In this document: piece by piece, positions 2,332 through 58,556 of the stretch
How positions within the stretch are numbered: position 1 is the first letter of the stretch
Layout of the letters: every line of letters starts with the position of its first letter
Assembly: GCF_004010195.1 (NCBI RefSeq)
Contig: NC_057726.1
Coordinates: forward strand, 70,661,211-70,725,210
Source: Chiloscyllium plagiosum
Lineage: Eukaryota
DNA length: 64,000 nt
Direction: 5' to 3'
Translations under genes and position numbers: made by a program
Notes under the pieces: model-generated
What the model was told of the DNA's origin: nothing
What the model saw: only the letters and a program-made list of their open reading frames with translations
Database searches by the model: none

Positions 2332-2436
2332 ATAATCGCGCAGATTCCAATGATAACCTTTACCCAAAGATTTTCGGTTTTTTGGGAGGTGGATTGACAT
2401 TATTCCTCGGCGTGATGTACGCATTCAGGCGAATCG
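2332..2436 (+). CDS. IgSF receptor copy A: transmembrane exon (DNRADSNDNLYPKIFGFLGGGLTLFLGVMYAFRRIG)
   Basis: Acceptor tcctcatag|, donor G|gtaaga, 105 nt, phase 1-1. It encodes a 19-residue hydrophobic stretch followed by RR stop-transfer residues. Confidence 0.85.
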
Positions 2437-3181
2437 GTAAGAATCAGATTCTATAAACACTACCAAGTATTGAGGACTACTTCAGATGCAATGCCGCGCT
2501 GAGAAACTGTCAAACAGCTCCTGCGTAGCCTGTCCCACATGGTGTCTTCAATTTAATGACACTGTGTCAGTTATTGATATCTCCAACTGGTGGACACACT
2601 CAAATGAAAACATAGAACATAGAATAACATAGTACAGGAACAGGCCATTCGACCTACCAAGTCTGTGACAGTGATGCCATTGAAAACGAATCCCAAATGC
2701 CCGCATGTGATCGGTATCCCTTTATTGTCTGGGTAGTAGAACATAAAGGGGCACAGAGCCACCAAAAACGGCCCCCGATGTGACTAACAGTCGAATTACT
2801 TCCTTTCTCTCCAGTAGGACTGGATTGCTGCGTGAACTAACAGTTCAGTATTCCGCCCAACGCCACCCTCCCCGCTGTAACCTCTCAATGCGGGATTGCA
2901 TTAGCGTTAACCTCTGCCATTCATGTTTTACACGGAATGCAACAAATTATTTCAAATTTTAACCTGTTCGTTGAGTCAAATTATTACCAATCTACATCAT
3001 GAGATTTATTCTGAACACAGATGCTTACAATCCACCAGAATGGATGAAGAAGTTTACGTAGACTTCTTGATTAGTCTTCAGCCATTCAGAGGAAATGCCA
3101 CTGTGATATTGGTTTGTAGCATTTTAGTATGTCGTTGCAATAGAATTCAGGTACTCGCTGACTGATCTATTTCACATTTAG

Positions 3182-3225
3182 GAACATGCAGAAAACCAAA
3201 AGAGCGTAATCAGCGCAATGAGCAG
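3182..3225 (+). CDS. IgSF receptor copy A: cytoplasmic exon 1 (GTCRKPKERNQRNEQ)
   Basis: Acceptor ttcacatttag|, donor CAG|gtaggt, 44 nt, phase 1-0. It joins the TM exon and the ITIM exon in frame. Confidence 0.8.
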
Positions 3226-3740
3226 GTAGGTCACTGGCAGCAACTATTGCAAAAGTGGTTACACTGACATTTCAAACAGCATCGCGATATTTTCCAGATA
3301 TCCAAACTGGTTCAATTTCCTGAATGTCTGCGGTTAAAAGGTATCCAGAGACAGTATAATAATGTCATTCAATGCAAGGAGCTCGATTACAAAGATGAAA
3401 GATTGTGCTATAATTAAAACATGAGCAGCGTTGTTTGAATACATTTAATAATTCGGGAGGAACACTTCAGATTAAAGGGCTAAGGGAGTTAATGTGACAG
3501 GAGAAAATGTATCAAGGAGATTGATTCAGAATCCAATCTGTTGGACTAAACGACATGTTTCAGTGATGGGAATTAAAGTAAAGCAATAAGTATAATTAAG
3601 AGAGGCCGACTCACATTGAAAAAAGATACTTTCATCTCCGAATTGAAAGTATATCGGGTAGATCTAATCTACCCGACACAAAATATATAGCAACGCAATT
3701 CTATTCCTCAAATAATAAGGAATGAAATACTTTTTTTTTT

Positions 3741-4027
3741 AGATTACTTACAGTGTGGAAACAGGCCCTTCGGCCCAACAAGTCCACACCGCCCGCCGAA
3801 GCGCAACCCACCCATACCCCTACATTTACCCTTTACCTAACACTACGGGCAATTTAGCATGGCCAATTCACCTGACCTGCACATCTTTGGATTGTGGGAG
3901 GAAACCGGAGCAGACACAGGGAGAATGTGCAAACTCCACACAGTCAGTCGCCTGAGGCGGGAATTGAACCCAGGTCTCTGGCGCTGTGAGGCAGCAGTGC
4001 TAACCACTGTGCCACCGTGCCGCCCAC
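3741..4027 (-). mobile_element. HE1-like tRNA-derived V-SINE
   Basis: Pol III A-box GGCACAGTGGTTAGC and B-box GGTTCAATTCC on the minus strand, central cacagtccaaagatgtgc core, taatcta tail. Confidence 0.85.
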
Positions 4028-4681
4028 TTATATTGAGGTTAAGAAATTTATCTTCAATACATTATTTGTTGGGAAAACGTTAAATGGGTGAATTAAGATG
4101 TTGCAGAATCACATGCATGAACATCAAGGTAATGTGTAAAGAGTTCAAAGGTGACATTCAGAAAAAAAATGCATTTTAAGAATGAATAGAGCCAAATCTT
4201 GTAATGTCAACAACATGAATTTTGGCATGATACCTTGAAATAATTGGAGTGTGGAAAACACCATTACACCCCCAGGCACTATTGGCACACTTTGTATCTA
4301 CACATGAAATCTGGGGCTGACATGATATGTTGTATGATATGTACTGATATGTACTGACACACAGTGACCTTGCCCCCATCCTCACCCCACCCCGCCTTTT
4401 ATCATTGTCCTCTTCCCTTTCCCAAGAATCCAGGACCACTAAATGACAATATGTATAACCTCGTTTCCACCCTCCCTATTCACCATCAGATCTCAGCAGA
4501 TCTTCCATTCACCTTCTACTTTCGCCTCCTCTGCACTCCGGCTTCCAATAACCCCGGTTTCATATAATAATCAGTCTGTTGTACATATTGGACACTCAGT
4601 GAATCGAGTTTCACCAGGATTGCAACATACAATAGACATGTTGATGGATTGTGCTCTATACTAACACTTCGTTTCTTTCAG

Positions 4682-4792
4682 ATCAGGTGTACAAAAACTA
4701 ATGAGGGAGTAACATACGCCACTCTCGGTTTCGTTAACCCCAGGGAAGCTAAGGAGTCTCGACCTTTAAATGAGACCACGGTGTATGCGCAG
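4682..4792 (+). CDS. IgSF receptor copy A: ITIM/ITSM exon (IRCTKTNEGVTYATLGFVNPREAKESRPLNETTVYAQ)
   Basis: Acceptor gtttctttcag|, donor CAG|gtaaag, 111 nt, phase 0-0. VTYATL fits the ITIM consensus (I/V/L/S)xYxx(L/V). TVYAQ+I/V fits the ITSM consensus TxYxx(V/I). Confidence 0.85.
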
Positions 4793-5957
4793 GTAAAGAG
4801 AATATGTGTCAATCTAAAATAAATAGAGGAAGGGGAAACACAGGCCTGAGAACATCTGTGCAGAGGAAGACTTCATGTGTGATAGCAGTGACATTTTTAC
4901 CCGAAAATAGAATCGAAATGTGAGTTTGTTTTTGTTCCAGCGAAACTAAAGGGATAGTAAATATAAATGCAAACATCCAGAATTGAATAAGATTAAACAA
5001 CAAAATGTTTCATGATTTAACGGCAGAAACAATTGTAATCTTAAAATTAAAGAATCAAAAAAGGGAAGCTGATGAGGTTTGAAATTTGCACAGTCGTCAT
5101 CTGAATGCTGCTTGAAGGTAAAATCAATGAAATAAGATCCAATCGACTCAGACAAAAGAAAACGAACCGAACAAACGATGTGTCCAGAACAAAATTTCGG
5201 CGTAAGTGTTGCTCCAAAGCTTGTGAAGCCAGTACAGTGTATTGAGTTCTGACGGCTATAGAACATGGAATCAATCCTATTCCTCGAACTGGCATTGAAC
5301 ACTATTGCAATGCTGCAGTGACCAGGGTGTAAAGCAGCCAGGGTGAGGTCGGAAAAGAGAATTAAATGATAAAGCGCAAGATAATGAGTGTAAGATGACC
5401 AGAGGTGTTTTATTGTCCAGTTGAAATGAAGCTATCTTTAAAACACCATTACAATTTCGTAAATTGAAAAAAAAAATCCTCGGAGTAGAATGTTAAAAAT
5501 TAGATGCTTTATCCGCTTTGGAAAGGTTCCACAGACAATTGAGGAAATGTCAGGTTTGATTGAAAAGTGGACCAAGGTGTCGCGGAGGAAATAGCCCCTC
5601 TGTGGAATGTTAACAGTGGAGAGTCTGGGGAGATTGTGTGTAGTGGTTTCACTACACGGTAGCTGCAGGGGAAGGCAGAGGAATATTCAAATGATGGAGT
5701 TAAACACAAAGACAGCGGTGAGCAAGTCATACCGCCTGAAGGGTGGGAAGAGGTGAAAAAATAACGCTATGAAGTTTAATGGAGACCCATTGAACGACAA
5801 TCGGGTAGCATACTCTTCCAGAGAAAGGAATACAAATCAGGAGCACTTACATGGGAGTGACAAGCTGGGACTAACGAATGATAAACTTATAAGATCTTAC
5901 ATTCTGTGCGGTTTCCCGCATACTTCAGACACCTGAGCAGCGCGTAAAGTTTTTTTT

Positions 5958-6322
5958 AGATTACATTACAGTGTGGAATCCTCCCACAGTCCAAAGATGT
6001 GCAGTTCAGGTGAATTGGCCCGTAGTGTTAGGTAAGGGGTAAATGTAGGGGTATGGGTGGGTTTCGCTTCGGCCCAACAAGTCCACACCGACCCGCCGAA
6101 GCGAGACCTACATTTACCCCTTACCTAACACTACGGGCAATTTAGCATGGCCAATTCACCTGAACTGCACATCTTTGGACTGTGGGAGGAAACCGGAGCA
6201 CCCGGAGGAAACCCACGCAGACACGGGGAGAACGTGCAAACTCCACACAGTCGCCGGAGGCGGGAATTGAACCCGGGTCTCTGGCACTGTGAGGGAGCAG
6301 TGCTAACCACTGTGCCACCGTG
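5958..6322 (-). mobile_element. HE1-like SINE with internal inverted (fold-back) duplication
   Basis: 5979-6070 is the reverse complement of SINE sequence at 6095-6190. Confidence 0.8.
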
Positions 6323-6479
6323 CATGAAGGCATACCAAGGTCTTCGAAAAACCTTGCAAGACCTTTGCTAAAATGTCCAAATACAGATATACACACGGAC
6401 TTGATGACGGACTTCAAATTTGATATTAAAAAATAACGTTATATTGTGACACTCAGAAATGACAGAGATTTGATCAGAG

Positions 6480-6579
6480 TCTAGATTAGAGTGGTTCTGG
6501 AAAGCACAGCAGGTCAGGCAGCATGCTCCTCGGATGCTCCTTTTCCTGCTGTGCTTTACCAGCACCACTCTAACCCAGC
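6480..6579. mobile_element. Short hairpin element with 13-bp target-site duplication
   Basis: TSD gatttgatcagag at 6467-6479 and 6580-6592. Inverted arms ttagagtgg..aaagcacagcagg / cctgctgtgcttt..ccactctaa. Confidence 0.75.
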
Positions 6580-7919
6580 GATTTGATCAGAGCTGAACAT
6601 AGAGCGAGGTGAACAGCAGCAGAAAGTGGAGTCGACCATTCGGCCCAGTTGGATTCTGGATGTTGCAGAATGGTCATCGACGATGAATAAGGAATGTATG
6701 AGGGTGTTGTAAGACAGACCGAGCTTGATATACCATGATAGCAAATCCCCAGGGGAGAGTAAGCACACGCAGCAGCAGTAGTTAAACGCCACATCTTCTG
6801 AGCAAATGTGACAAATGTGGAGAAACTGGTAGACAGGAAGAGAATCTTTATGGAAGACGGGAAGTGCTGAAGTGGAGTCAAGGTTACTTGGGCTTGTCGT
6901 GATCTTACAAGATCATCGAACTGAAAAGTTAATTCTGCTTCTGCTCACCTCAGAGGTTGAATGCTTCCCTTTAAAAAGATATTTTCTCAGATATCTGGGA
7001 TTTCTCCATTTTTCACCGTCGTACTAAATTAAATTGATCAGTGACTTCATTTCCCGAATCATTATATGAGTAGTCCTTTTGAAGCCATTGCTATAAGCAT
7101 CTGAGTTTCTCCACATGTGTGAAAGATATATTAGCGACTATTGAAATTGTACAGGTTAGAATGGATTCCAAACTTTACACAGGAATTGTTGGAAACCTCT
7201 GCATGGTTTCACTTATCTCAACAGTTTCTACAACTGCACCTCAGAAAGCAATAGTTAAACCAATTTTACGTACAGACAAAACCTGACTTTTAGATAAGTA
7301 TTGAAACAGGTGCTTCAATATTTAATTAGTTATTTTTCATGTAAAAATGTGCAAGGTTTTGGCAAATCGATTGGTGGGACGAATGAATAATTATGTGCGG
7401 GTAAAACGATATTTGACAGCCAATTGACCACCTCCATTGTTGTAGAATAACAATGCACAAGCTGCATTTCAGAAGTCTGACTTCAGCCCCAATTGTTGGT
7501 ATTTACAGGCGAAACACGAAGTGACAGGGAACATAATCTACGTTGACTTCCAAATAAACCTGTTTGTCTATAACCTGGTGTTGTGTGATTTCTAACTTTG
7601 TACAGCCCAGTCAACACAGGCTCCTCCAAATTAGGGAGCACAGGAATCTTGCGGTTTCATTAGAACAGAGAAGATTGAAGGGATAGATTATTTTTCTTTA
7701 AACAACACAGTATTCGAAGGTTGTGCAACTGAAAGAATGTCCAAAGTTGATAGCATTTACGTAGAAGTTAAGATAAAAGGAAATTGTACTGGCGTGTTCA
7801 CCTTTTGATGAGGTAGCTTGGTCAAAATATATTTTACTAAGCGAGAAGTCTTCAATCGCATTGCAAAGATTTTAAATAAGTAGCAAGGTGAAATGACTAA
7901 ACTCTTAATTTGTCCATCT

Positions 7920-8513
7920 CTTTTCAAAGTTTGTGCGAAGATTTGTAGCTCGGGTGCTCGTTGAGTTTGTGGATGAATGCCATGCCTCTAGGAGTTCCCT
8001 GGCTGTTCTCTGTCTGGCTTGCCCTATGGTAGTAGTGTTGTCCCAGTCGAATTCATGTTGCTTGTTGTCTGCGTGTGTGGCTACTAAGGGTAGCTGGTCG
8101 TGTCGTTTCGTGGCGAGTATCTGTTCATGTATGCGGATTGTTAGCTGTCTTCCTGTTTGTCCTATATCGTGTTTAGTGCAGTCCTTGCATGGTATTTTGT
8201 ACACTACATTCGTTTTGCTCATGTTGGGTATCGGGTCCTTCGTTCTGGTGAGTTGTTGTCTGAGCGTGGCTGTTGGTTTGTGTGCCGTTATGAGTCCTAG
8301 GGGTCGCAGTAGTCTGGCTGTCAGTTCCGAGATGCTCCTGATGTATGGTAGTGTGGCTAGTCCTTTTGGTTGTGGTATGTCCTCGTTCCGTGGTCTTTCT
8401 CTTAGGCATCTGCTGATGAAGTTGCGCGGGTATCCGTTTTTGGCGAATACCTTGTATAGGTGTTCCTCTTCTTCTTTTTGCAGTTCTGGTGTACTGAAGT
8501 GTGCAGTGTCCAT
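7920..8513 (-). mobile_element. Penelope-like element, 3' fragment with GIY-YIG endonuclease remnant
   Basis: ORF 7905..8513 contains NGYP, TLPYI, NVVYKIPCKDC..DIGQTGR.L..RIHE and RELLEAWH. It lies antisense in the last intron of copy A. Confidence 0.88.
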
Positions 8514-8828
8514 CTCTTTATCTGCAATACATTATCCACAAATTTGCAGAAAGCAGATAAAACGTTAACCTTGTAAAAAGACTTTGAAATACAGGGCAAA
8601 ATTATAGTGACCCGGAGAAATGACAGGTCAGTTGGAGCAACTGGTTGTATTTTCAGAGCGTCAACATTTTTTCATCTTTCTAGACTCACAAAGGATCGTC
8701 ATTATTTTGACATCTTCAGCAAAGCAAATGTCTGTGATGCTCTCACTACTTTGAATATACATCAGTTAAACAGATGTTTGTTGCATTTAAAATAGGCGCT
8801 CATAATACAAAATGTTTCTGTGTTTCAG

Positions 8829-8900
8829 ATCAAACGAGGGCAATCAAACAATGGAGCTGTATACACTGATTCATCTATTCCTGGCAGTCATACAACCTAA
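8829..8900 (+). CDS. IgSF receptor copy A: terminal coding exon (IKRGQSNNGAVYTDSSIPGSHTT*)
   Basis: Acceptor gtttctgtgtttcag|, phase 0. Its first codon ATC completes the ITSM; stop at 8898-8900; it resembles the preceding exon. Confidence 0.65.
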   Translation: MKRGQSNNGAVYTDSSIPGSHTT

Positions 8901-9075
8901 ATGACACGGTGGATTGAATGCGCAATGAAAATCGATAATAACAGCGGGGTTTTTTGTTACACGGGTATCGATTATGACATTTTGTCTATGACTTTTCATG
9001 TTAACTGATTCAAGTTTATTCCATCTAATTAATCTTTCAATGCCTTACTAAACCTTAAAGGGTGACTCAGCAGCC

Positions 9076-9081
9076 AATAAA
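9076..9081 (+). promoter_or_regulatory. Candidate polyadenylation signal of copy A
   Basis: AATAAA about 175 nt downstream of the stop at 8900. Confidence 0.4.
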
Positions 9082-9779
9082 TCGCAGTGATACATTTCTG
9101 TGGACTCAAAGCTATACAGATCCATTCGTGCACAGTGCCCTATTCCTTTCAGACAGAAAGAACATGTGCATTTACACAGGGATTTCTCGGGACAACTAAT
9201 TGACTCTGATTGCTCAATCCACCTGGATTACCAATTACAGAAACCTCGGTATTAACTGTCATACAGTATTTGTGAGTGGCATGGCAACCCCATGGCAACA
9301 CACACACACCAATCAGTGATCATATATCAACCAATCAACACTCTCCTTTCATCCTGAATCAATGCTGATTTTCGCCTAAATTGAGATTTTGCAAATTGTT
9401 CTGATTAGTGCAAGATGAAAATCTTTGACTGAACGTGTCGTTTCTTCCTTGCAAAACCTTCAAGCCCGTTATCTACCTGGAAATAATTGCTTGTCACCCA
9501 CCACATTAATAAGTGCGTCCCCTCTCTCATCTTTAAGGAAATCAATTAAATGGCTACAATTTCCTGTCAAGATCTCTTTGCACTCAAACAGTCAGCCTGC
9601 CTGTGGAGAGCTTCACCCACCAGGGCACTTTTTAAAAAGAGGAATTCAAATTACGTCAAATTGTTTCCACTGTCAATGCTCAATCTTCACACGTCTAATT
9701 TTATAAAAGAATAATATCTTGTTTCCACCCAAAACACTCAACAACTCAGAAAATCTGCAGTTTCATTGGCAATATAGAA

Positions 9780-10079
9780 TAGAATCCCTATAGTGAGTAA
9801 ACAGGCGACCAAGTCCACACCGACCTTCCAAAGAGTATCCATTCTGACCTGTCCCCCCTATTTCCACTAACTAATGCATCTAGCCGACACATCCCTAAAC
9901 ACTATGGGCATGGTCAATTCATCCTAAACTGGGTATCTTTGTCACTCTGGGAGGAAACGGGAGCTCCCAGCGGTAACCCACGCAGACACGGGGAGCATGT
10001 ACAAACTTTACACAGGCAGTCGCCCGAGACTGGAATCTAACCCTGTGAGGCAGTAGTGCTAACCACTGAGCCACCATCC
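9780..10079 (-). mobile_element. Older HE1-like SINE
   Basis: Same A-box and core motifs, more diverged. Confidence 0.75.
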
Positions 10080-12894
10080 CAAAAACAAACGTCATCTGGA
10101 CTGTATTGTTCTTCTACCCTGAAATCATCCTATAAATTCAACATTGCCACCTTCCTCAATACAGTCAGGATTATTTTCATTGTCAAGCTTCATAATCTTG
10201 CTAATTCTCGAGAAGTCTCCAAACCTGGGCTTTGTCTCATGCAGACATAGAGTCATAGAGATGTTTAGCATGGAAATTAAGACTGTCAGCCAATGCGGTC
10301 TTTAATTTCTTTTTGAATTTTGTGTCCCTCCGCATGTAATAGGAGCCAATGAAGGTTCAATATTTTTCATTGAGTCAATTAGAACCATATTGCGTAGGTT
10401 CTTAATGACTTATAACCGTCGATGGTCTACGATAACATCGAAGCTTTTAAAAGGTCAGCCATTTTAGAATTAAAGCGCCTCTACTGCTTCAGGCAGCAGG
10501 AAAGGTACAAAATATGTTCCAGAGCGTTTCTTAATACACAGGATATTGCATATCCCAGTGACTTCAGTGCTGCAGCAATAAAAAAGCAGAATTTGATAAA
10601 CCTGTAATCCATTGCAGTCAATCAAAAATTTCCAAACCAGAATTTATTTTGTGCATTATGCCTTAGAAGCATTTTAACTTCCACTGTGGATTAAACACCA
10701 CAACACATATGGTAGTTTGTAGTTTGATCTGATTGTGGACATGTCATCTATTGCATTAGTGCCACCTTCTCAATTAGAGTTTATGATACCTTCTCAACTG
10801 AATAACATGTTTTGAACTGATGAAACAATCTCATGTTTTTGGGAACATTTTATATGATACAATTTAAATTTTCAATAAAGGCATCGCTTGAACTGAGGTC
10901 CACATATTTGCTGACTTTCTAAAATGATCTAAAATATGTTTCATTGCACTGCAAGGCTGCAAATATATAAAAAAGCAGAATTTGATAAACCTGTAATCCA
11001 TTGCATTGTAATCCATCGAGACTTCTCGAGAATTAGCAAGATTATGAAGTTTGACAATGAAAATAATCCTGACTTTATTGAGGCAATGTTGAATTTATAG
11101 GATGTTTTCAGGGTAGAAGAACAATACAGTCCAGATGACGTTTGTTTCTGGGTTGGTGGCTCAGTGGTTAGCACTACTGCCTCACAGGGTTAGACTCCAG
11201 CCTCGGGCGACTACCTGTGTAAAGTTTGTACATGCTCCCCGTGTCTGCGTGTGTGTTCGAAATTGATTTCTCTTTATGCCCCAGTTGTGGCTAGTGTTCA
11301 GTTTTAGGCTGATTTCTGGCGCATCACTTCCCCAATCCATTTAGTTTGCATTCCTGAAAATTTTGGGGGCAACTTTATAGCCAGAATTTAATCCCAAATC
11401 TGCAATATTGCCAATTGTCAATTATAACACAAGAATTATGCTTTTCAGTGAGAAGGATGGACTTCTCCAAACTATGCTTTGGAGCATATTTTCAGAATTG
11501 AGACCCAAATTCCCTCATGGGAAATTCACTGTTGATCATTTTTCCCTTATTCAGTACTAACACAATTTTGTTTTACTGAATGATAAAAAAAGGGAGAACT
11601 TTGCTTGAGTGGTAATAAATCAGAATAACCAGAGCTATCCATTGCCTCAGGCATGAGGTGAGGTTGAGAAGGTGGGATTTCTGTGAGTTTTGACCACATT
11701 TGAGAATTCACAAGCACATACAAACCGAGATACAAAAAGACAAGGAAGTACTCATATTAGGAATGGGAAAGGAATAAAGAACTCAGTGAAGCTGTGTTGT
11801 TTCCCTCCATTCCTTTTGAATCTTTGAAGTTTGATGAGGAGAGGAGTTTGTGGATACACTAATTCTCAATCTGTCATTCACTGGTTAAGACTGGCCCATT
11901 AAATTTCCTTGAAGAAGGTTATTTCTTACTTTTTCCATGCTTAATGATGGGATTTGCACAGAGTAGTTTATTGGAAAATGCTGAGTATGAAGAGCTACAA
12001 GGAGGTTATTCTGTTGCTTCCAAAGAGAGTGAGAGTGATTTGGGTGCTTTCTCTTTGTAGATGAAATATTTCATCTCTATTCTCGAAATATGAAGCTCTC
12101 GATTCTTGCCCAGAAACCAATATTTAGATTACTTCTGTACTGAGCACACCCAAACACAGACCTACAGAACTGACATGCCCAACATTCTCAGCTACTGCTT
12201 GAATAAGTCAGCATTCCAGATATGATTCACAATGAGCTCCAGTAACTCATTTTGAAACAACCTCCTGATACAAAGAATCTGGATAACCTAAGCTCTCCCT
12301 CTACAACTGTCAGTATTCAGCCTTCAATTCATAAGCTCTGAGCTGAAACTGGCTGGCCTTTACATACTTTCTGCAAATGTGCTTGCCCAGGATCGCAAGG
12401 AATCCAGGAGTACAGACATGCTCCGGTCTTGATGCATTGACTGTCATTGGGATAGGGTGTGTGAAATCTATCTGTGCCTGTTCCCATTGATTAATCAATG
12501 TCTCTGTACAACTTTACCATATTCACATCTTCAGGCCTAACTGCTGCTGCGGCCACCTCACAACTCAAATCAGGGCCTTGCAGCCTCCTTAGCTCCTGTT
12601 CCTGTCCACTGATTACCCAATTTAATGAGAGTCCTCAACCTTCTGGTCGACTCTGACTTTTATTCTTACTGCCTCAAGTGGTTATTTCACAGCTTCCACT
12701 AAATCCTTGACTATAATAATCTTTTCTTTCATATCTTTGCTCAATATTTTATTCAGTGAATGCCCTCTTAAATATTAGAGTGTAGTATTCATTCTATGTG
12801 ATCATCTGGATCCGACATTTCATTAGATTTCAATGTTCCCTTGTAACTGCTGCTTAAATATAAATTGAATGAACTTAAAAGGTCATACATAGAC

Positions 12895-13360
12895 CATAGA
12901 ACATAGAACAATACAGCACAATACAGGCGCTTCAGCCCTTGATATTCTGCAATCTTTATCCTACTCTAAGATCAAACTAACCTACACAACCCTTATTTTA
13001 ATCTCATCCAGGTACGTATCCAAGAGTCACTTAAATGTCCCTAATGTATCTGACTCTACTAACGTTGTTCACAGTGCATTCCACCCATCCACTACTCTCT
13101 GTGGAAAGAGCCTCCCTCTGACATCGCCCCGAAACCTTCCTCCAATCACCTGAAAATTAGCCATGTTGCGATAGCCATTTCCGCCCTAGAAAAAGGTATC
13201 TGGCTATCCACTCTATCTATGCCTCTCATCATCTTGTACACCTCTATCAAGTCACCTCTCATCCTTCTTCACTCCAATGAGAAAGGCCTAAGCTCCCTCA
13301 ACCTTTTTTCATAACACATGCTCTCCAGTCCAGGCTGCTTCCTTGTAAATCTCCTCTGAA
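12895..13360 (-). mobile_element. CR1-type LINE 3' fragment
   Basis: The acatagaaca tail and CR1 3' region resemble 30728-31800 and 51105-51550. Confidence 0.7.
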
Positions 13361-13399
13361 TTGAACTGAATAGGTAAACAGCAGCAAAAACAAAAACGA

Positions 13400-14010
13400 A
13401 GGTATAGGCAAATGTAAGAGTTTGTGAGTCCATTCAGTATTCTAACAACAGTAGGGTAAGAACTGTTTTAAAACTGGATGGTGCATGTGTTCAGGCTTCT
13501 GTACATTCTACCCGATGGTAGAGGTTGCAGAAAAACATTGCCTGGGTGGAATGGATCCTTGAGAATGCTGACGACCTTTCCTTGACAGTAGGTCTGGTAG
13601 ATGGATTCTTTAGATGGGAGGTTGGCCTTTGGGATTGTCCGGGCCAAGTTCACCATGCTCTGTAATTGTCTCCGATCTTAAAAGGGACAGTTGCCATTCC
13701 AAGTGGTGATACATCCAGACAGAATGCTCTCGATGGTGCACTTATAATAGTTGGCAAGGGTATTTTCTATCATGCCAAATTTCCTCAGCTGCCTGAGGAA
13801 GAAGAGAGTTGTTGGGCCTTTGTTGTTGATGACCACTCCCTGGAGCTTGACACTCTCCACTTGTTTCACCTCTATGCTGTTAATGTTTAGGGGGACATGA
13901 GTAACATCCTGCCGAAAGTCAATAATGAGTTACTTGGTTTTGCCAGTATTGAGAGCTAGGTTGTTCTCAGTGCACCATTTTCCAGGTCTTCCACAACCCA
14001 TCTGTAGTCT
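13400..14010 (-). mobile_element. Rex1/Babar-like LINE 3' fragment
   Basis: Translations FFLRQLRKFG..TLANYYKCTIESILSGCITTWNGNC and ILKDPFHPG..FLQPLPSGRMYRS are typical of the C-terminus of this LINE group. Confidence 0.7.
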
Positions 14011-14866
14011 GTTTCATGACCACCTGAGATTCGTCTGCACCTTCTCTAAAGATACACATCCTTTGTATAATGGGGTGACCAGAACTGAGTACAATATTCC
14101 AAGTGTGATCTAACCAGGGCTTTACAGAGCTGCAGCGTAACCTTGTGGCTCTTCCAGTTCTCCATTTGTCTGCATTACTCTTTTGGTGATTTTTAAAGCC
14201 AATTTCTATATGGGGTATATGTCAATGTCTCATCATTAAAAGCATGTTTTATTATTCTTCAGGTAAAAATATCGAAACTTGGGGGGAGGGGGGGGGCATG
14301 GGAATCCTCCACACTCAATCCTGATATTCTTTATGACTGCCAAATCATCCAATCCAATTCTCTTCAAACTTCTTGATCAATGATATGCAGAGCTCACAAG
14401 GCTGTGAATTGATTTGCTTCATCTCAACTTTCCTTTCCTTTGAAATATCCCATTTAACTATTGAAATTCAATGTTTACTTTCCTTTCACTATGTAAATTC
14501 AATATTCACATGATACTCTTAAAAGAGAAATAAAATATTCCTGCGTAAACTCAAACATTGATAATTCTTGTTAATTAGTTGTTTTACAATTGGGTATTTC
14601 AGGTTTTCAAAAGTTATAAAAGTACTTTACTAAACTTCTTTGGACATGTCACTTCTCAAAATACTACAAGTTCACAATCACATATTCCCTTCAGAACTTG
14701 TCAGCTTCCCATAACTCATAATGTGTGTATTCTTTCTTTTTACTGACAGAACATTTAATGCTGAACGAACTCTGACTGATACATTACCTTCAGCTCACAC
14801 TTCTTTTGTCAATGCTTTTTGGAGTGCAGCTATTTGGCAAAGTTCTTCACAAGGAGTCCTACAAGT

Positions 14867-16490
14867 AATTAGACTCGGTCTGTGACAGGTAATGAGGAAA
14901 CCCACAAGAGGTGAAAACATATTTGATCTCATTCTTACTAATCTGCCAGCTGCAGATACATTTGTCCATAACAGTATCCGTAAAAGGAACCAAAGCACAG
15001 TCTTTGTGGAGACAAGCTGATGCCTTCACATTGAGCATGCCCTCCATTATGTTGTGTGGCATTATTGTGCAAATTGGGATTTACTTCACACAGATCTGGC
15101 TACTTAAGACTGGGTTTCAATGTGGATGCATCAGTATCTGCAACCACATGGACCAGCAAATCCCACACTCACCCATTGCCATCATGACAGGGGATCAACC
15201 CTGGTACAATGAAAAGTGAAGGAGGGCATGTCAGAAGCAGCACCAGGCATATATAAAAATGAGATATCAACCTAGTGAAGCTACTAAACAGGACTGCTTG
15301 CTTGCCAAACAGCAAGTGATAGACCAAGCTAAACAATCCCACAATCTGCGGATCAGATCTAAGCTCAGCAGTTATGACACATCCAGTTGTGAATGGCAAT
15401 GGACAATAAAACAACTCACTGGAGGAGGATGCTCCTCAAATATCCTCATCATCAACGATGAAGACCCCAGTATTTAGTGCAAAAGATACAGCTGATGCAT
15501 TCGTAATAATCTTCAACTAGCAGTCCCAATTATATTGTCCATCTTGGCTCCAGCATCACAGATGCCAGTCTTCAGCGAAATCAATTCACTCCATATGGTA
15601 TCAAGAAGTGAATGGAGGCATTCGATATTGCCAATTCTTTGGGTTTTGACAACACACCAGCAATAGTATCAAAGACATGCGCCCGGACATACAGCTCCAC
15701 AAGCCAAGCTATTCCAGCACAGTTACAGCCCGGGCATCGACATCTAACAATGTTAGAAGTTACCCAGATTATGTACTGGACACATAAAGCAGGACAAATC
15801 CACCCCAATCTCTTACTGCCTCGTCCATCAATTTGCAAATATCAGGAAAGTGACGGAAGGCGTTATCAACAATGCTATCAAACATCACACACTCAGCAAT
15901 AACCTGCTCACACACACAGTTTGGGTTCCACCATGACCGTTCAGCTCCTGACCTCATTACCGTGTTATTTCAAACCTGGAAAAAAGAGCTGCCTTCGAGA
16001 AGTGAGGGTGACATTCCTCGATACCAATGCCACATTCGATTCAGTGTGGTATCAAGGAGCTTCAGCAAAATTGGAATCAGTGGGTATCAAAGGAAAATCT
16101 CTCCACTGGTTGGAGTCACACCTGGCACATAGGCAAATGTTTGTGGTTTTTAGTCAGTCATAATATCTCTGGAGCATCTTAGCAGGAGTTCCTTAGGTAG
16201 TGCCCTACACTGAACCAACCTCAGCTAACTCGTCAACAACCTTTCTTCTATCATCAGGTCAGAAGTGGAGATGTTCGCTGATGTCTGCACAATGTTCAGC
16301 AACATTTGCAACTCATCAAATAGCACAAACAGCAAGTGATAGAGCTAAATAATCCCACTACCAACACATCAGATCAAAACTCTGCTGTCCTAACACATTC
16401 GGTTGTGAATGGCAATGGACTAAAAAACAACTCACTGGAGAAAGATGCTGCAAAAATATACCCATCCTCAATGATGGAAGAGCCCAGCAT
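14867..16490 (+). mobile_element. Decayed LINE (CR1/L2 group) reverse transcriptase region
   Basis: Remnants QFGF..DRSAPDLIT, LD..ATFDSVW, GVP, MFAD. Same family as 48420-50830. Confidence 0.75.
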
Positions 16491-16494
16491 ATTC

Positions 16495-16830
16495 GTGCTC
16501 AGTGGTTAGCTCTGCTGCCTCAGAGCACCAGGGACCCGGATTCAATTCCAGCCTCAGGGAACTGTCTGTGTGGAATTTGCACATTCTCCCCTCCTTTGCA
16601 TGGATTTCCTCCAGGTGCACTGGCTTCCTCCTACAGTCCAAGGATGTGCAGTTTAGGTGAATTGGACATGCTAAGTTGTCCATAGCATTCATGGACGTTG
16701 AGGCTTAGTCGCATTAGTCAGGGTTAACATAGAGTAATAGGTGTAGGAGAATGGGTCTGGCTGGGATACTCTTCAAAGTGTCAGGGTGGACTTGTTAGGC
16801 CAAATGACTTGTTTCCACACTGTCCATAAT
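16495..16830 (+). mobile_element. HE1-like SINE
   Basis: gctcagtggttagc A-box, ggattcaattcc B-box, core and ttccacactg tail. Confidence 0.75.
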
Positions 16831-44372: not shown

Positions 44373-44641
44373 TTAAATCCCTTAGCCCTTTAATCTGAAG
44401 TGTTCCTCCCGAATTATTAAATGTATTCAAACAACGCTGTAATGTTTTAATTATATAGTACAATCTTTCTTCTTTGTAATCGAGCTCCTTGCATTGAATG
44501 ACATTATTATACTGTCTCTGGATACCTTTTAACCGCAGACATTCAGGAAATTGAACCAGCTTGGATATCTGGAAAAATATCGCGATGCTGTTTGAAATGT
44601 CAGTGTAACCACTTTTGCAATAGTTGCTGCCAGTGACCTAC

Positions 44642-44685
44642 CTGCTCATTGCGCTGATTACGCTCTTTTGGTTTTCTGCATGTTC
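44642..44685 (-). CDS. IgSF receptor copy B: cytoplasmic exon 1 (last recognisable exon of this copy)
   Basis: Identical to 3182-3225, acceptor catgtag|. Read-through of the donor gives VGHWQQLLQKWLH*. Confidence 0.75.
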
Positions 44686-45430
44686 CTACATGTGAAATAG
44701 ATCAGTCAGCGAGTACCTGAATTCTATTGCAACGACATACTAAAATGCTCCAAACCAATATCACAGTGGCATTTCCTCTGAATGGCCGAAGACTAATCAA
44801 GAAGTCTACGTAAACTTCTTCATCCATTCTGGTGGATTGTAAGCATCTGTGTTCAGAATAAATCTCATGATGTAAACTGGTTATAATTTGACTCAACGAA
44901 CAGGTTAAAATTTGAAATAATTTGTTGCATTCCGTGTAAAACATGAATGGCAGAGGTTAACGCTAATGCAATCCCGCATTGAGAGGTTACAGCGGGGAGG
45001 GTGGCGTTGGGCGGAATACTGAACTGTTAGTTCACGCAGCAATCCAGTCCTACTGGAGAGAAAGGAAGTAATTCGACTGTTAGTCACATCGGGGGCCGTT
45101 TTTGGTGGCTCTGTGCCCCTTTATGTTCTACTACCCAGACAATAAAGGGATACCGATCACATGCGGGCATTTGGGATTCGTTTTCAATGGCATCACTGTC
45201 ACAGACTTGGTAGGTCGAATGGCCTGTTCCTGTACAATGTTGTTCTATGTTCTATGTTTTCATTTGAGTGTGTCCACCAGTTGGAGATATCAATAACTGA
45301 CACAGTGTCATTAAATTGAAGACACCATGTGGGACAGGCTACGCAGGAGCTGTTTGACAGTTTCTCAGCGCGGCATTGCATCTGAAGTAGTCCTCAATAC
45401 TTGGTAGTGTTTATAGAATCTGATTCTTAC

Positions 45431-45535
45431 CGATTCGCCTGAATGCGTACATCACGCCGAGGAATAATGTCAATCCACCTCCCAAAAAACCGAAAATCTT
45501 TGGGTAAAGGTTATCATTGGAATCTGCGCGATTAT
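45431..45535 (-). CDS. IgSF receptor copy B: transmembrane exon
   Basis: Nucleotide-identical to 2332-2436. Acceptor cacag|, donor |gtaaga; phase-compatible with the C1 exon about 10.9 kb upstream. Confidence 0.82.
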
Positions 45536-48419
45536 CTGTGAGGACAGGTGTAATTTCAGTTTGTTTGCATCATTACAGAATAATAATGAATATCAAATTA
45601 TTACAGCTATCACATTTTTTACATTTAATTTGGGCAGAATAATTCCAATGACGTTTGAGCTTGATATATATCAGACGCTGAAATGTTTTATCTGATGACT
45701 CTGGTTAACATACAAAGTCAACACAATAAAACAATTGGTGAGAGATCCATTGCTAACAGGAGATTTTGGCATGATCATTCGCACTTTAATTTGCAGCCTC
45801 CCCTTTTGCTTGTGCCATCCAATCCGTTTGAGGAAAGCTTTGCCTCTAGTAAGAACTGTGGGTCTGAAATTCATTGAAAAAAAAAACAACTGTTCGAAAT
45901 ATTCAGCAAACCTGGAGCAACTGTCTTGGAAGAAACGTTTAAGTAGTAAATCCATTACATTGCGCAATATTTTGAAAAAGTTCCTTTATCTCAGTCTATT
46001 TTATATATGTTATATTTAAATGTTTGCATGAAATATCCAAACTGGACAGGCATAGAGAGCTGGGAATAATTGGTATCAGCAAGACTGCGCGCCACGATAA
46101 TTTGGAAATTCATGGACAGGTACTGCATTCCGAAAAATTACTCATTCATGTTTCAAATGGATACCCTCCACTGCTTACTTGTAGGATCAAAAAAAAAAGG
46201 TTATATTTGTCGAAGGTGAATCTGTTGACTTGTTGACAAAACTATTGAATGTCTTCAACCCAGTGTTCTCGAAACTTAAACTGTTGCATTAATGAACTCA
46301 CTTCCTTTTCTGTGGTGGAAGTAGTGTCGGTAGCTGGCAATTGATAAAATGCCCTATCAACAGTGACTCCTTTAATGGTTGAATGCAGAAAAACGTGGAA
46401 AACATTCCGTTTTGAGGTCATTTATCTTTCATCTCACAGAAATACCGGCATTGGGTTCGCCATTTTATTTTAAATCGCCTCCCACTCTCTTAATTTCAAC
46501 AGCTTTATTCTGACAGTCACAGCACCATCCATATCTTGGCTTATTATTGAATCGAGTAACAACTGTCCCATAAACGCTGTGACAATGAAAGCAGGCAATG
46601 TATTGCGAATACCACAACAAGAAGCTCAGTTACACACTTCTCCAATCCTGTCATCTGACTGTGCTGAACAGTTAACAAATATGATTAAACACTCTTCATT
46701 TGTCAGGATGAGAATCAGCACTACGGAAGCACCTGCAATTCAGCCAGGACGATTGAACAGCAGCCCACCGATCACCTTCAACATTAACACCCATTCGATT
46801 CAGCAAATACGTGCTGAGCAGAATTGGGCTATTCAATCCTTCATAACCTGTCTGCCATTCAATTACACCACGGCTGATCAATTTTTGGTCTCAACCCAGT
46901 ATTCCGATCTGTCCTCGATAGGCCTAACAGCATTGTCTATCGGAAAGCTAATGAAGTGCACGTGAGATCTATTAAATGAGACAACATCAGCGATATTCCA
47001 GGAAATTAATTCTACACATTAATTATAGGAGAACAAAGTTGTCCTCACACCCGCCTTAAATTTAAAACCTCAAGTTCTCAAACGGTATACCCTTGATTTT
47101 GTCTCTCCTGAAAGTGAAAATCGATCAAGTCTAATTTTGCATATTTCATTCTGATCAATTCTCATTGTTCTGGAAGAGATAAATCTTTACGCTTTCTCCG
47201 TGTGATAACCGCTTTAATCAGGAATTAATTGATTGCTCATTACCTGAACTGATTATAACGCAATTAAGTACTTTTTCCACTCAAGAGAGTAAAATTCGAG
47301 ATATAGTTTCACAAAAGCCCCGTCTAAATATAGAAAAATTACTAGCGCTACCGACCACTCCTCCCTTTCCTATCCCCGCAAATGACGACACAGCGCGACC
47401 TATTTTCATACTCCAGTCACCTTTCAATTAATGCCTCAATTCCCTTTGTCTTCCTAAGACTTCCCTTGCCATGGAAGCACATTAGACAGTAGTGAGCACA
47501 ATCTACAGTCGGCATTGTCGCAACTCATCTTCTCTGCTTCAACAGCACCGTTCAAATACAAGGGAAGCGTATACATTCCAGACAAATGTGTCTCCAACTC
47601 ACACATTATTACGACTGGGGTCTCATCGCTGCTTAATCGTCATTGTAGAGTTAGAATACTCAACCTTCTTTTCTAAACAAAACTCCGGGTAAGGGGTGAA
47701 GACAGAAGCTGAGCCAAACATCTCATTGACAAGGGAAATTAATTAAGGAGAAATTCAGATCTAGGAACCAACGTAGCCAGTCCAGCAAATAATGGAGAAG
47801 ATTGAAAAGGAAAATACTGAACTGGGAATAACTTTTCTGAATGGGGAGTTGACCCTGATAATGCTGACAGCGCACTAAACAGTTCCATGACAGGAAAAGC
47901 CAGACGCCACACGTCCAACATCTGAAGCATCTGAATAAGGTATTCCTTTGTATCAAGTCATTCTTTAGTCAGAGAGCAGTAAGGGTATGGAATGCTTTGC
48001 CTGCAACGCTAGTAGATTCGTCAACTTTAAGTACATGTAAGTCGTCATTGAACAAGCATATGGACGTACATGGAATAGTGTACGTTAGATGGGCTTCAGA
48101 TTGGTATGACAGGTTGGCTCAACATCGCGGGCCGAAGGGCCTATACTGCGCTGTAATGTTCTATGTTCTATGTACAAATAGTTATCATACCAAACGCTGT
48201 AGTGTCTGCGTATTCATATCTTTTTGTCCGAATTGGATTCAGGCACTTTCTAGTCACATGTTTTTTCAAGTCGACATTTAGTGTCATTGATTTGCTTGGA
48301 ATGAGTCGCTCCCACTTCCACATCTAAAGGTAGATTTTAAGTAATGCAATTCAGAAGTAGAGAAAAAGCCGGCAGGAAAAGACTATTATCAAACTTCTAG
48401 TATCACCAGCTCCCCATAA

Positions 48420-50830: not shown

Positions 50831-52626
50831 ATCCCACAAAAATAAATTTTAAAATTAGAACTTGTTTATTATAACCGAGCTCTGGGCATACTGTGGGCCA
50901 CTCGCCGATTGTATCATTACCAAAGAGTAGACACGTTTCATCACAGAGAGGATGTTGTGGGACTTTCAAACGAATATACAAGTTCATCAACCGCATCGGT
51001 GAGGACGAGAAACTTTTCTGATGTAAGATTTAGAAGGCGAAAATTTCTCAATTTGTCCAGAAATGGAAAATGTTCATCGGTCGACAATACAGATGTTGAT
51101 TAGTCTCATAGAGCCATAGAGATGTACAGCATGGAAACAGAACCTTCGGTCCAACCCGTCCATGCCGACCAGATATCCCAACCCAATCTAGTCCCACCTG
51201 CCAGCACCCAGCTCATATCCCTCCAAATCCTTCCTATTCATATACCCATCCAAATGCCTCTTAAATGTTACAATTGTACCAGCCTCCACCACATCCTCTG
51301 GCAGCTCATTCCATATGCGCACCACCCTCTGCATGAAAAGTTGCCCCTTAGGACTCTTTTATGTCTTTCCCCTATCACCCTAAACCTATGCCCTCTACTT
51401 CTGGCCTCCCCGACGCCAGGGAAAAGACTTTTGTCTATTTATCCTATCCATACCCCTCATAATTTTGTAAACCTCAACCTGCATCGCTCCAAGGAAAACA
51501 GCCCCAGCCTGTTCAGCCTCTCCCTGTAGCTTAGATCCTTCAACCCTGGCAACAACCATGTAAATCTTTTCTGAACTCTTTCTGCACGCAATATTCCAAC
51601 AGTGGCCTAACCAATGCCCTGTGCAGCCGCAACATGACCTCCCAACTCCTGTACTCAATACTCTGACCAATATAGAAAAGCATACCAAATGCCTTCTTCT
51701 CTGTCCTATCGACATGCAACTCAAATTTCAAGGAGCTATGAACCTGCGATCCAAGATCTCTTTGTTCAGCAACACTCCCTATGACCTTACCATTAAGTTT
51801 ATAAGTCCTGCTAAGATTTGCTTTCCCAAAATTCAGCACCTCGCATTTATCTGAATTAAACTCCATCTGGTCAAGATCCTGTTGTAATCTGAGGTAACCC
51901 GCTTCGCTGTCCACTACACCTCCAAATTTGATGTCATCTGCAAACTGACTAAATGTGCCTCTTATGCTGACACCCAAATCATTAATGTAAATGACAAAAA
52001 GTAGGGGGTCCAACAGCGATCCTTTTGGCACTCCACTGGTCACAGGCCTCCAGTCTGAAAAACAACCCTCCACCACCGCACTCTGTCTTCTACCTTCGAG
52101 CCAGTCTGTATCCAAATAGCTAGTTCTCCCTGTATTCCATGAGATCCAACCTTGCTAATCAGTCTCCCATGGGGAACCTTGTAGAACGCCTTACTGAAGT
52201 CCATATAGATCACATGACTGCTCTGCCCTCACCAATCTTCTTTGTTACTTCTTCAAAAAACTCAATCACGTTTGTGAGACACGATTTCCCACGCACAAAG
52301 CAATGTTGATATGTACTTCCTGTCCCTCACGAATCCCTCCAACAACTTGTGCACCACCGAGTTCAGGCCCACCGGTTGATAGTTCCCGGTCTTGTCGTTA
52401 CCACCCTTCTTAAACAGTGGCACCACGTTTGCCAACCTCCAGTCTTCTGGCACCTCACCTGTGACTATCGATGATACAAGTATCTCAGGAAGAGGCACAG
52501 CAATCACTTCTCTAGCTTCCCACAGAGTTCTCGGGTACACCTGATCAGGTCCTGAGGAGTTATCCGCTCTTAATCATTTCAAGACATCCAGCACTTCCTC
52601 CTCTGTAATCGGTATATTTTGCAAGA

Positions 52627-52724
52627 GCTGGAAATGTGTTGCTGGAAAAGCGCAGCAGGTCAGGCAGCATCCAGGGAACAGGAGAATCGACGTTTCGGGC
52701 ATAAGCCCTTCTTCAGGAGGGCTG
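52627..52724 (-). mobile_element. Young short hammerhead-motif element with 13-bp TSD
   Basis: TSD atattttgcaaga at 52614-52626 and 52725-52737. About 90 nt identical to 34952-35042. Confidence 0.85.
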
Positions 52725-53119
52725 ATATTTTGCAAGATGTCACCATCTGTTTCTCTACAGTCTATATCTTCCATATCCTTTTCCCCAGTAAATACTGATG
52801 CAAAATATTCATTTAGTATCTCCCCCATTTTCTGTGGCTCCACACAAAGGCCACTTTGCTGATCTTTGAGGGGCCCTATTCTCTTCCTAGTTACCCTTTT
52901 GTCCTTAATATATTTGGAAATACCCTTTGTGTTTTCCTAATTCTATTTGCCAAAGCTACCTCATGACCCCGTTTTGCCCTCCAGATTTCCCCCTTAAGTA
53001 TACTCCTACGTTTTTAAAACCCTTCTAGGGATTCACTCGATCTATCCTGTCTATACATGACATATGCTTCCTTCTTTTTCTTAACCAAACCCTCAATTTC
53101 TTTACTCATTCAGCATTCC

Positions 53120-56451: not shown

Positions 56452-56754
56452 CCGATTTATTGAAAGTGTAGCTGACATTTGCTGGCGTCCGAAGTGAGAT
56501 GTGAGACACTTGACAAGTGTAAACGGTACCGCTCTGAACGGGTTCTGTCTCAGTCAGGTTGCTGGAAACTTCATAGAGCCCGATGGAATTCTGCAGTTTG
56601 ACATGTTCCATCCCGGTTGCAATTTCTGAAACATTTTTGTACCAAGTGATGTTCAGGTTGTCTGGGTAAAACGCAGCAGTTGTGCAAAGAAGAGTTAGAG
56701 GGAAAGCTGAGCCGTCCTCCAGCAGTTTGACCAGTTTGAGTGGAGTCGGAGGGA
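56452..56754 (-). CDS. IgSF receptor copy B: C1-set Ig domain exon
   Basis: Acceptor tctttttgtttag|, donor G|gtaggt, 303 nt, phase 1-1. C1 hallmarks: LTLLCTTAAFYP, ITWYK, GLYEVSSNL, YTCQVSHISL. Several N-x-S/T sites. Confidence 0.93.
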
Positions 56755-58011
56755 CTAAACAAAAAGAAAAGGAAACGTTTGTTTTGAAGCCCATTTAATT
56801 TGAAAAATGTGAAGGAAATTCTGTCACAAGGTCAAACAGAAACAGAAAACCGCAAAAGGCGTTCGTTACTCGGCATTTCGGGTGTTAAAAGGTGATACCA
56901 TTCAGATCAAACATTCTGCTGGCACAAGATTCAGATCGAAGAGAAAGCAGAAAGGTTCTTCAAAGCCTAATTACAGACGTAATTTGAAATTTGAAAAGAG
57001 AATCGTTATAGCTAATGTTGCAGTTTTAGCGTCATAGAGTTGGAATTAAAGGAAACGTTGATTTAAATTTTCCACCGGCAAATGCCTTTGCTTCTGCCTC
57101 TGAAATCAATTAATTGCTTATTTCGCAATCTTAGTATTTTCCATTCCCCCAAATATTTAAATACGCAAAACATCACGTTTCAAATGTTCATACCAATTAT
57201 GAGATGTGTAGTCCTTCTCCGTGCTTTTCTTTCTGAGATGGGATCATTATGTTCCAACCTCTGAGGAGATCGCTTTTGACAGTTCAACAAAAATTCCCCA
57301 CCCAAAACACACGTTACACACTGAGTAAAACTCGCATTCATTAAATAAACCGAAGTTAATGTAAACTCGGCTGAAGGGCATGTGAAGTTTGAGTAAACAC
57401 GTCTCATTTTCATTTAGAACCCTAACCTTTCTTCAGCAAGGCATCTGTAGTAGCCCAATCTAACAACAAGGATCAGATTGAGTGTGTACGCGTTGGATTA
57501 CAGAGGACAGAGAGGCGACTTTATTGAACTTTAGAAGATTCTTAGAGGATTTGACATTATTCATGCAGAAAGGTTATGTCCCCTTGTGAGAGAAACTATG
57601 ACCAGAGGGCATAATCTCAGAATAAGAGGGTGCTTATTTAAAACAGAGATAAGGTAGAAATTGTTCTGTTAGAGGTTGATAATCTGCAGAATACTTTTCC
57701 ACAGAGGGTTCTTGAGACTTGGTTTGTAAGTGTATTCCACACTGGGATAGATACATATTTGTTTGCTTACTAATTCAAGGTTTATCAGGGAAAGGCAGGA
57801 AAGTGGAATTAAGGGCTAGCTGATGAGCCAGGATATCATTGATTGGCGGAGCAGGCCCTAAACGTCTATCTCCACTCCGACATCTTATGTTGTTAAGATC
57901 GGAACAGAAGATTACAAATTCTTTTCTTGGAGATTAAATCCACATTTTGATTGTTATTCAAATTAATGCCTTACAAAAAACGCAGTATTTTCCCCTCTCC
58001 GTAATCCTTAC

Positions 58012-58323
58012 CAAACACGACCAGGTTGGTGTCGGTTCCGTTTGCAGCCACATTGTGTGTCACTCTGCAGTAATAAACCACAGCGTCCTCCAATCTTACA
58101 TCTGCCAGTTGTAAGACAGATCCTCCCTGAGTGAGGAAATAAAGCTGGATTCTGCGGTCCAAACTTTCCTCCAAGAACCCATCTCTCCCATTTCTCCACC
58201 ACTGCACTTTCACTGGCTTTTTGTCTCGAAAGATGGGGAAAATGCAATAAAGTTTAACCGAGGAGCCTCTCGTGACTGCGCACTCTCGATCTTGTCTCAC
58301 CGTTAGTTGAGAATTGTGAGAGG
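58012..58323 (-). CDS. IgSF receptor copy B: V-set (germline VJ-type) Ig domain exon
   Basis: Acceptor tttttgttttgcaacag|, donor G|gtaagg, 312 nt, phase 1-1. Motifs: SVKLYC, VQWWR, LQLADVRLEDAVVYYC, and a J-like G strand ANGTDTNLVV. Confidence 0.92.
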
Positions 58324-58496
58324 CTGTTGCAAAACAAAAAGAAGAGCTAACTATCGAATTAAATGATGAATAACAAACCTAGAAGATGTTATGAAAACAA
58401 GCACGTATTGACAAAACAAAACAGCAATAGAAAAAGCTGTATAAAAAGCTTTTATATATCTACACATCAGAAACAGAGTGAAATAACAGTCACTCA

Positions 58497-58556
58497 TTGG
58501 AAAGAGGTATAACTGATAGATAACATGGCCGTGCAGCGAAGTAAAACACTGAACAT
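58497..58556 (-). CDS. IgSF receptor copy B: putative leader exon (MFSVLLRCTAMLSISYTSFQ), splice donor appears damaged
   Basis: Signal-peptide-like ORF about 170 nt upstream of the V exon. It ends CAA-TGAGTG rather than a phase-1 G|GTGAGT. Confidence 0.45.

Follow-up and report, generated by a model that had tools for sequence, protein, structure and literature searches.

A stretch of 64,000 nt from the shark Chiloscyllium plagiosum (contig NC_057726.1, positions 70,661,211 to 70,725,210; this whole stretch is referred to as the window) contains two copies of a receptor gene, designated A and B, in the two arms of a large inverted repeat. A stalk/transmembrane (TM) exon and a first cytoplasmic exon are present in both copies. 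Copy A, located on the plus strand, continues into exons for an immunoreceptor tyrosine-based inhibition motif (ITIM) and an immunoreceptor tyrosine-based switch motif (ITSM). In copy B, on the minus strand, both of these exons are deleted, the TM segment has no charged residue, and no replacement ITIM exon is found in the window. The explanation we prefer, tentatively, is that B is a 3'-truncated inverted duplicate of A on its way to becoming a pseudogene, and no working partner of it; we infer that B is a separate locus, that its deletion is derived and that it is non-functional.

For A and B alike, each exon was read and searched singly. Four exons of A are located in the window, and their AG/GT splice sites and phases all fit. 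These are the stalk/TM exon (2332-2436), delimited by its splice sites and in phase 1 at both ends; the first cytoplasmic exon, called tail-1 here (3182-3225), which ends in phase 0 at CAG/GTAGGT; the ITIM exon (4682-4792), which encodes VTYATL and terminates in TVYAQ; and the last coding exon (8829-8900), which carries the stop codon and whose first residue, I, completes the ITSM (TxYxxI). An AATAAA signal follows at 9076, 3' of the last coding exon. ITIMs are defined as (S/I/V/L)xYxx(I/V/L) and ITSMs as TxYxx(V/I). The definition of the ITIM is matched in the tail of A by VTYATL in 4682-4792, and that of the ITSM is matched if 4682-4792 is spliced to 8829-8900, as the AG/GT sites and phase 0 permit. 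The TM exon aligns to the TM segment of the Heptranchias protein P0001 (E 3e-07), and the Mobula protein P0153 has an ITIM-to-ITSM unit with which the ITIM exon is colinear (E 7e-04). The TM core, IFGFLGGGLTLFLGVMYAF, is devoid of charged residues. A first-pass annotation of this DNA had already let A continue into 4682-4792 and 8829-8900 and had described an uncharged TM segment; the two exons were recovered with their splice sites and phases, and the TM core confirms the latter point. Judged from its motifs, A would be an inhibitory receptor gene specifying a VJ-type V domain, one C1 domain, an uncharged TM segment, and an ITIM plus an ITSM for the recruitment of SH2-phosphatases.

Copy B starts with a leader-like open reading frame (ORF) of 20 codons followed by TGA (58494-58556, minus strand as all exons of B). 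It is followed by an open VJ-type V exon (58012-58323; Pfam V-set 27.8 bits with a cut-off of 26, Ig_3 with E 9.1e-09), an open C1-set exon (56452-56754; Pfam C1-set 48.4 bits with a cut-off of 21), the stalk/TM exon (45431-45535) and tail-1 (44642-44685), the last two being the same as in A. A search of the window with eleven proteins of the family likewise returned a single V exon and a single C1 exon for B. Over the TM and tail-1 exons, which had been reported as identical before, indeed none of 149 nt differs between A and B, and 18 differences were counted over the surrounding 1.3 kb (A 2190-3493).

Beyond tail-1, B followed in its own sense tracks A to 3493-3496, is interrupted by a short interspersed element (SINE)-like sequence, resumes with A 3497-3520 and is then joined to A ~10822. 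This deletion junction is located at approximately 44052-44056 on the minus strand, and only GA is common to both A flanks, a 2-bp overlap. A jump from A 3520 with GA microhomology had been noticed in the first-pass annotation and was found again, with the far side at A ~10822 instead of 10824. The block of 7.3 kb present only in A (3521-10823) contains both tyrosine exons and the likely 3' untranslated region. The SINE-like insertion of 288 bp (44085-44372), found only in B, lies 28 nt before the junction. When the peptides of the four A exons were searched against the window by tblastn, TM and tail-1 were detected twice, the ITIM and ITSM exons once each, and no further match with E <0.1 was found in the window. 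B therefore lacks both tyrosine-motif exons, as had been proposed, since each of them occurs once, in A.

Read-through past the tail-1 donor of B yields 13 codons and a stop (44600-44641, minus strand). No Tyr is encoded there, in agreement with the earlier prediction of a tail free of cytoplasmic tyrosines. A and B do not differ in the read-through stretch as far as B 44577, and ATTAAA/AATAAA signals are present 150-700 nt beyond the stop in B. Splicing of B to another ITIM exon had been considered as well. In a crude scan, the 11 kb following the tail-1 donor yielded 19 candidate acceptors, only one of them with an ITIM-like match, 9.5 kb off; this lone match was taken as chance, and no replacement exon was recognised in that stretch. 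An ITIM/ITSM exon of a second gene at 41484-41620 was rejected as a tail for B, being frameshifted and on the opposite strand. Since homologues in other species carry the ITIM-to-ITSM unit, loss of the tail is probably the derived state.

These arrangements suggest a possible course of events. A block with A and a dead convergent neighbour, described below, would have been copied in inverted orientation, or else would have persisted as a second haplotype. After the copies had separated, as marked by ~2.3% substitutions, a microhomology-mediated deletion of 7.3 kb may have taken the two tyrosine exons and the 3' end of B; a second deletion in B would account for the absence of 11.2 kb of repeats, and B would have gained two SINE-like insertions. 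B would be left with open V, C1, TM and tail-1 exons and nothing to splice to. It should be unable to signal via tyrosines or to dock an adaptor with an immunoreceptor tyrosine-based activation motif through a charged TM residue, and at most a read-through product with a 31-residue tail free of tyrosine would be expected. Lacking the tyrosine exons and a charged TM segment, B could, if made, only be a non-signalling form. An activating partner of the DAP12 or FcR-gamma type was rejected, because the TM segment of B has no charged residue.

The window is dominated by one large inverted repeat, and 25 inverted pairs were returned in a repeat search of the window. An assembly gap of 500 N (33009-33508), the sole run of N in the window, separates the arms. 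In a blastn comparison of the sequences left and right of it, positions 1-32453 paired with 48114-33509 in nine colinear minus-strand alignments showing 94.8-98.6% identity. These comprise 13,698 aligned columns with 315 mismatches (2.3%) and 46 gap openings, and the inverted pairing is far above chance expectation. The left arm (contig 1, 1-32453) is cut off at the start of the window, and as it begins at position 1, the repeat extends further upstream. Homology of the right arm presumably continues to at least 58556, opposite DNA upstream of the window. The right arm defined by blastn (contig 2, 33509-48114) matches the left arm from the first base of contig 2, with 33509 corresponding to 32453. 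The left arm is longer because of two private blocks, the one containing the tyrosine exons of A and a repeat-rich one of 11.2 kb (11892-23076). The flanks of the latter are fused in B with an overlap of 2-4 nt, and no target-site duplication was seen at this fusion. Only in B are found a second SINE-like insertion (42041-42366) and a piece of 246 bp (45678-45922) in the intron preceding the TM exon.

The gap is located exactly on the axis of the repeat, so that A and B sit on different contigs; their neighbourhood, their convergence and their status as two loci all depend on this gap. Of the two convergent copies announced in the first-pass annotation, the shared inverted exons were recovered, while the convergence hangs on the scaffold join across N. 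No A or B exon was found near the gap, the closest exons of the family being those at 29442-29724 and 36337-36702, and ORFs spanning the gap are runs of X only. With the A and B exons that far away, the reading frame across the gap is irrelevant. The final 555 bp of contig 1 (32454-33008) are without a partner in contig 2. The last ~65 nt of this contig (32944-33008) resemble the 5' start of a repeated element, with weak 81% matches at 30729-30775 and 35320-35366, and the start of such an element may be the reason why both contigs stop there.

The arms could represent two loci, two haplotypes of one locus, or something else. A real second locus is fairly probable, the other haplotype of a single locus is a serious possibility of lower probability, and any third alternative is very improbable. 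Indicative of two loci are 2.3% substitutions together with five private insertions/deletions ranging from 246 bp to 11.2 kb. The arm divergence is about ten times the usual heterozygosity of sharks, a general value for sharks and not one for this genome. For a word test, 5,871 31-mers were taken from the B stretch 41500-47400. A share of 49.4% of these is also contained in the A arm, which sets a ceiling of 0.494 for a genome with A only. All eight DNA-like runs of the same species, which derive from four samples and two studies, hold 0.58-0.89 of the words. As these values exceed the ceiling, sequence of the B type is present in all four samples, which lends weak support to fixation. Nine runs of a related species hold 0.15-0.18 of the words, and a comparison of these shares with 0.49 places the arms, as a rough estimate, a third to half as far apart as the two species. 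Were the arms alleles, a divergence of that size would be that of a very old allele pair. Three small runs (121-280 million letters, kind not recorded, three samples from one study) contain 0.10-0.11 of the words each; these might stem from transcribed parts, from repeat words or from sparse DNA coverage.

Several points weigh against two loci. The word test is silent on A, and the samples are perhaps not independent animals, one of them perhaps being the source of the assembly. With each arm on a contig of its own and the gap itself forming the axis of the repeat, the layout is one that would be expected for a retained haplotype contig beside its allele. A and B may, with a probability short of even, be the two parental haplotypes of one locus, with a divergent haplotype contig scaffolded in inverted orientation beside its allele. 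In keeping with this, homology to contig 1 sets in at the very first base of contig 2, the two contigs break off no more than 555 bp from one shared homologous position, contig 1 in the start of a repeat, and the join is a gap of fixed length, 500 N. The locus is also part of an immune multigene cluster, and it is in such clusters that haplotypes differ most. Heterotype false duplications are known at divergent regions, where they mimic gene or segmental duplications, as set out in a portion of the VGP paper (PMC8081667). The symmetry of the contig ends is neutral in this respect, since a true palindrome would break symmetrically as well at a mirrored element that is hard to assemble. Two haplotypes are harder to reconcile with a substitution level of 2.3%, and with two SINE-like insertions and three more large insertions/deletions private to one arm in ~14 kb, and the B-type words in all four samples of the species, as weak support for fixation, point in the same direction. 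If A and B were haplotypes nevertheless, a case also envisaged in the first-pass annotation, the tail-less sibling would be a deletion allele of an inhibitory receptor and no second gene. The window would then be a warning case, in which a mirror duplication centred on a gap gives a single polymorphic gene the appearance of a receptor pair, and counts of genes of this family would be inflated in the assembly.

If B is a separate locus, as preferred here, it is most likely a silent or unproductive gene, and a tail-less surface protein is less likely. The leader ORF of B offers GTTATA, after 43 nt, as its sole phase-1 GT. No phase-1 leader donor with a positive score was found within 3.2 kb upstream of the V exon of B; the best of the 25 candidates listed in the donor scan scored -1.1, and the leader candidate at 58556 is absent from these 25. 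The V domain of B has Val at position 81, in the D-x-G-x-Y-x-C stretch, and Asp at position 97, in the place of the second Gly of the J-like G-x-G; at both positions Gly is present in 14 of 14 homologues, hand-picked from 165 listed ones. Both glycines occupy hallmark positions of V domains. Among the 20 runs holding words of the B stretch, none is on record as RNA. Furthermore, different mutations have disrupted the second gene in the two arms, which indicates that the region tolerates decay.

Other observations argue against such a loss of function. The weights of the donor score are crude. The 5' half of A is beyond the window, and the leader defect and glycine replacements of B may be common to A and harmless. 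The V, C1, TM and tail-1 exons of B are all open and have intact AG/GT sites. Finally, the identity of TM and tail-1 to those of A mildly favours constraint, or it simply reflects youth.

It is from these intact parts that a functional partner would have to be built. B would be a real second locus that is expressed, and a SIRP-gamma-like non-signalling or decoy partner of A would be produced by read-through or from a cryptic 3' end. We regard this as unlikely. Compatible with it are the open exons with their splice sites, the TM and tail-1 exons shared with A, and a read-through stop after 13 codons that is followed by ATTAAA/AATAAA signals 150-700 nt on. Known paired families do include members of this kind, SIRP-gamma being labelled 'no signal' and LILRA3 'soluble' in the relevant part of PMC3533184. 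Opposed to it are the 0 of 20 runs on record as RNA, the leader without a usable donor, the replacement of two glycines invariant in the family, and its dependence on a two-locus status that is itself only fairly probable. In addition, truncated duplicates in receptor clusters are usually pseudogenes, and truncated copies as such are ordinary in multigene receptor clusters. It is more doubtful still that B is a fixed second locus, is transcribed, and gives rise to a membrane receptor with an A-type ectodomain and TM segment and a tail without tyrosine. If this were true, a non-signalling decoy would have arisen from an inhibitory receptor through one microhomology deletion, seen at ~2% divergence in a cartilaginous fish, and the loss-of-tail step in the evolution of paired receptors would be visible apart from the gain of a charged TM segment. 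A separate and expressed B would also be a datable example of an inhibitory receptor shedding its signalling tail, and this in the oldest living lineage of jawed vertebrates and in a large, barely described VJ-C1-ITIM family.

The first-pass annotation had seen in B a non-signalling or decoy form, or else a pseudogene, and in both copies possibly a paired receptor system caught at birth. The missing tyrosine exons and the uncharged TM segment bear out a form unable to signal, while the signs of decay in leader and V domain detract from a decoy. For the paired system, a predicted inhibitory A and a tail-less B stand; the uncharged TM segment of B does not suit an activating partner, and the pair as such depends on a join across N. 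'Caught at birth' was overstated, because short-tailed members of the family with a charged TM segment already exist in Heptranchias (P0158, P0163).

That the 7.3-kb absence in B is an assembly error within contig 2, the animal having two complete copies, is without direct support and highly improbable, given a clean junction with a 2-bp overlap, a SINE-like insertion of B's own beside it, many private substitutions in B, and runs from four samples exceeding the B words that A could supply (words of the junction were not singled out).

Among known paired receptors the SIRPs offer the closest scheme for comparison. SIRP-alpha is inhibitory, SIRP-beta acts with DAP12, and SIRP-gamma gives 'no signal', according to the portions of PMC3533184 and PMC12975943 that deal with them. 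As described there, a germline-joined V domain followed by C1-set domains, and an inhibitory member with a tyrosine tail next to a sibling without motifs, are features resembling those of A and B. In contrast, SIRPs have V plus two C1-set domains, while the shark B gene has one C1 exon, and tail loss in B is a raw genomic deletion known here from sequence alone. No SIRP chains were present among the best 60 of 109 solved-structure matches of the V exon or the best 60 of 6134 of the C1 exon; for V, antibody V domains and PD-L1 were the best matches within these 60 of 109. The likeness to the SIRPs is one of architecture and tail logic and does not amount to evidence of membership or orthology. 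LILRB versus LILRA3, the latter termed 'soluble' in the same section of PMC3533184, is a comparable case of signal loss.

Two further comparisons apply under the haplotype reading. Unlike B with its uncharged TM segment, KIR3DS1 carries a charged TM residue and is a DAP12-coupled receptor. Otherwise, tail variants segregating at one locus would resemble KIR3DL1/KIR3DS1, a long-tailed inhibitory and a short-tailed form that are treated as alleles of one locus in the pertinent part of PMC10468049. In heterotype false duplication, separate haplotype contigs from divergent regions are placed in the primary assembly and are betrayed by half coverage, again following a portion of PMC8081667. The two arms agree with that description in that diverged copies occupy separate contigs next to each other at a scaffold gap; for alleles, the divergence and the structural differences between A and B are high.

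The best solved-structure match of the C1 exon of B was shark UrIg2 (9dmx) with E 6.7e-15. UrIg and UrIg2 of elasmobranchs likewise have a non-rearranging single-exon VJ followed by C1-type domains. UrIg2 differs in having nine C1-type domains, while in the gene described here one C1 domain is followed by a TM exon and an ITIM/ITSM tail. In the main text of the UrIg2 paper, 'ITIM', 'ITSM', 'SIRP' and 'inhibitory' occur 0 times each.

Judged by similarity, A and B are members of a large family of elasmobranch receptors, non-rearranging and of VJ-C1-TM structure, with ITIM/ITSM tails. A HMMER search with the V exon of B against 1.84 billion representative proteins detected 194 proteins with E <=0.001, three of them with E <=1e-30. 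The nearest is a partial protein of Chiloscyllium punctatum, P0003 (GCC18889.1), with 84% identity over V and 94% over C1. This nearest public homologue is itself a partial model without a leader. Full-length relatives were found in Heptranchias, Heterodontus, Mobula, Hypanus, Hemitrygon, Leucoraja and Callorhinchus, and in many relatives the tail contains between two and five tyrosine motifs. Their automatic names are diverse and include 'tyrosine-protein phosphatase non-receptor type substrate 1-like', 'natural cytotoxicity triggering receptor 3 ligand 1-like', 'tapasin-related protein-like' and 'immunoglobulin lambda-1 light chain-like'; the NCBI names of several homologues are of the 'SIRP-alpha-like' type. 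In two proteins of Heptranchias perlo, P0158 and P0163, the TM region contains Arg and Asp and the short tail is free of tyrosine motifs. The family thus already contains both kinds of members elsewhere, the activating type being present in another shark. Annotated products of the window itself were also looked for. With P0001 as query, 15 proteins among 1944 candidates were obtained, none of them marked as such a product, and the V ORF as query gave one protein among four candidates, P0003. Among the titles and abstracts listed in a literature search there was no account of an elasmobranch VJ-C1-TM-ITIM family, and a description elsewhere is possible; the family seems to be little described.

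A second gene of the family is found in both arms, convergent with A in the left and with B in the right one. Its V exon is a relic with a stop codon and a frameshift in the left arm (29442-29724, minus strand) and is open in the right arm (36337-36702, plus strand; Pfam V-set 32.3 bits). The reverse applies to the terminal ITIM/ITSM exon, which is open in the left arm (24112-24249, minus strand) with LRYSTL and ITLYTEI, and is frameshifted before the ITSM in the right arm (~41484-41620, plus strand, opposite to B). The damage is therefore reciprocal and independent between the arms. As each copy has its own disabling changes, the gene was probably dead before the arms separated.

Apart from these genes, an ORF of 202 amino acids in the A-only block (7905-8513, minus strand) had a transposon-derived look, but 0 Pfam families matched at E <=0.01, and its reading as a GIY-YIG endonuclease was rejected. 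ORF fragments resembling reverse transcriptase are located at 51540-52843 (minus strand), 31190-31879 (minus strand) and 34422-34760 (plus strand). For 31190-31549 no Pfam match was obtained, and 51540-52115 matched RVT_1 with 23.8 bits, under the cut-off of 29.6. The fragment 51540-52843 lies within the 11-kb intron between the C1 and TM exons of B, and a related fragment occurs in mirror image in the two arms close to the gap.

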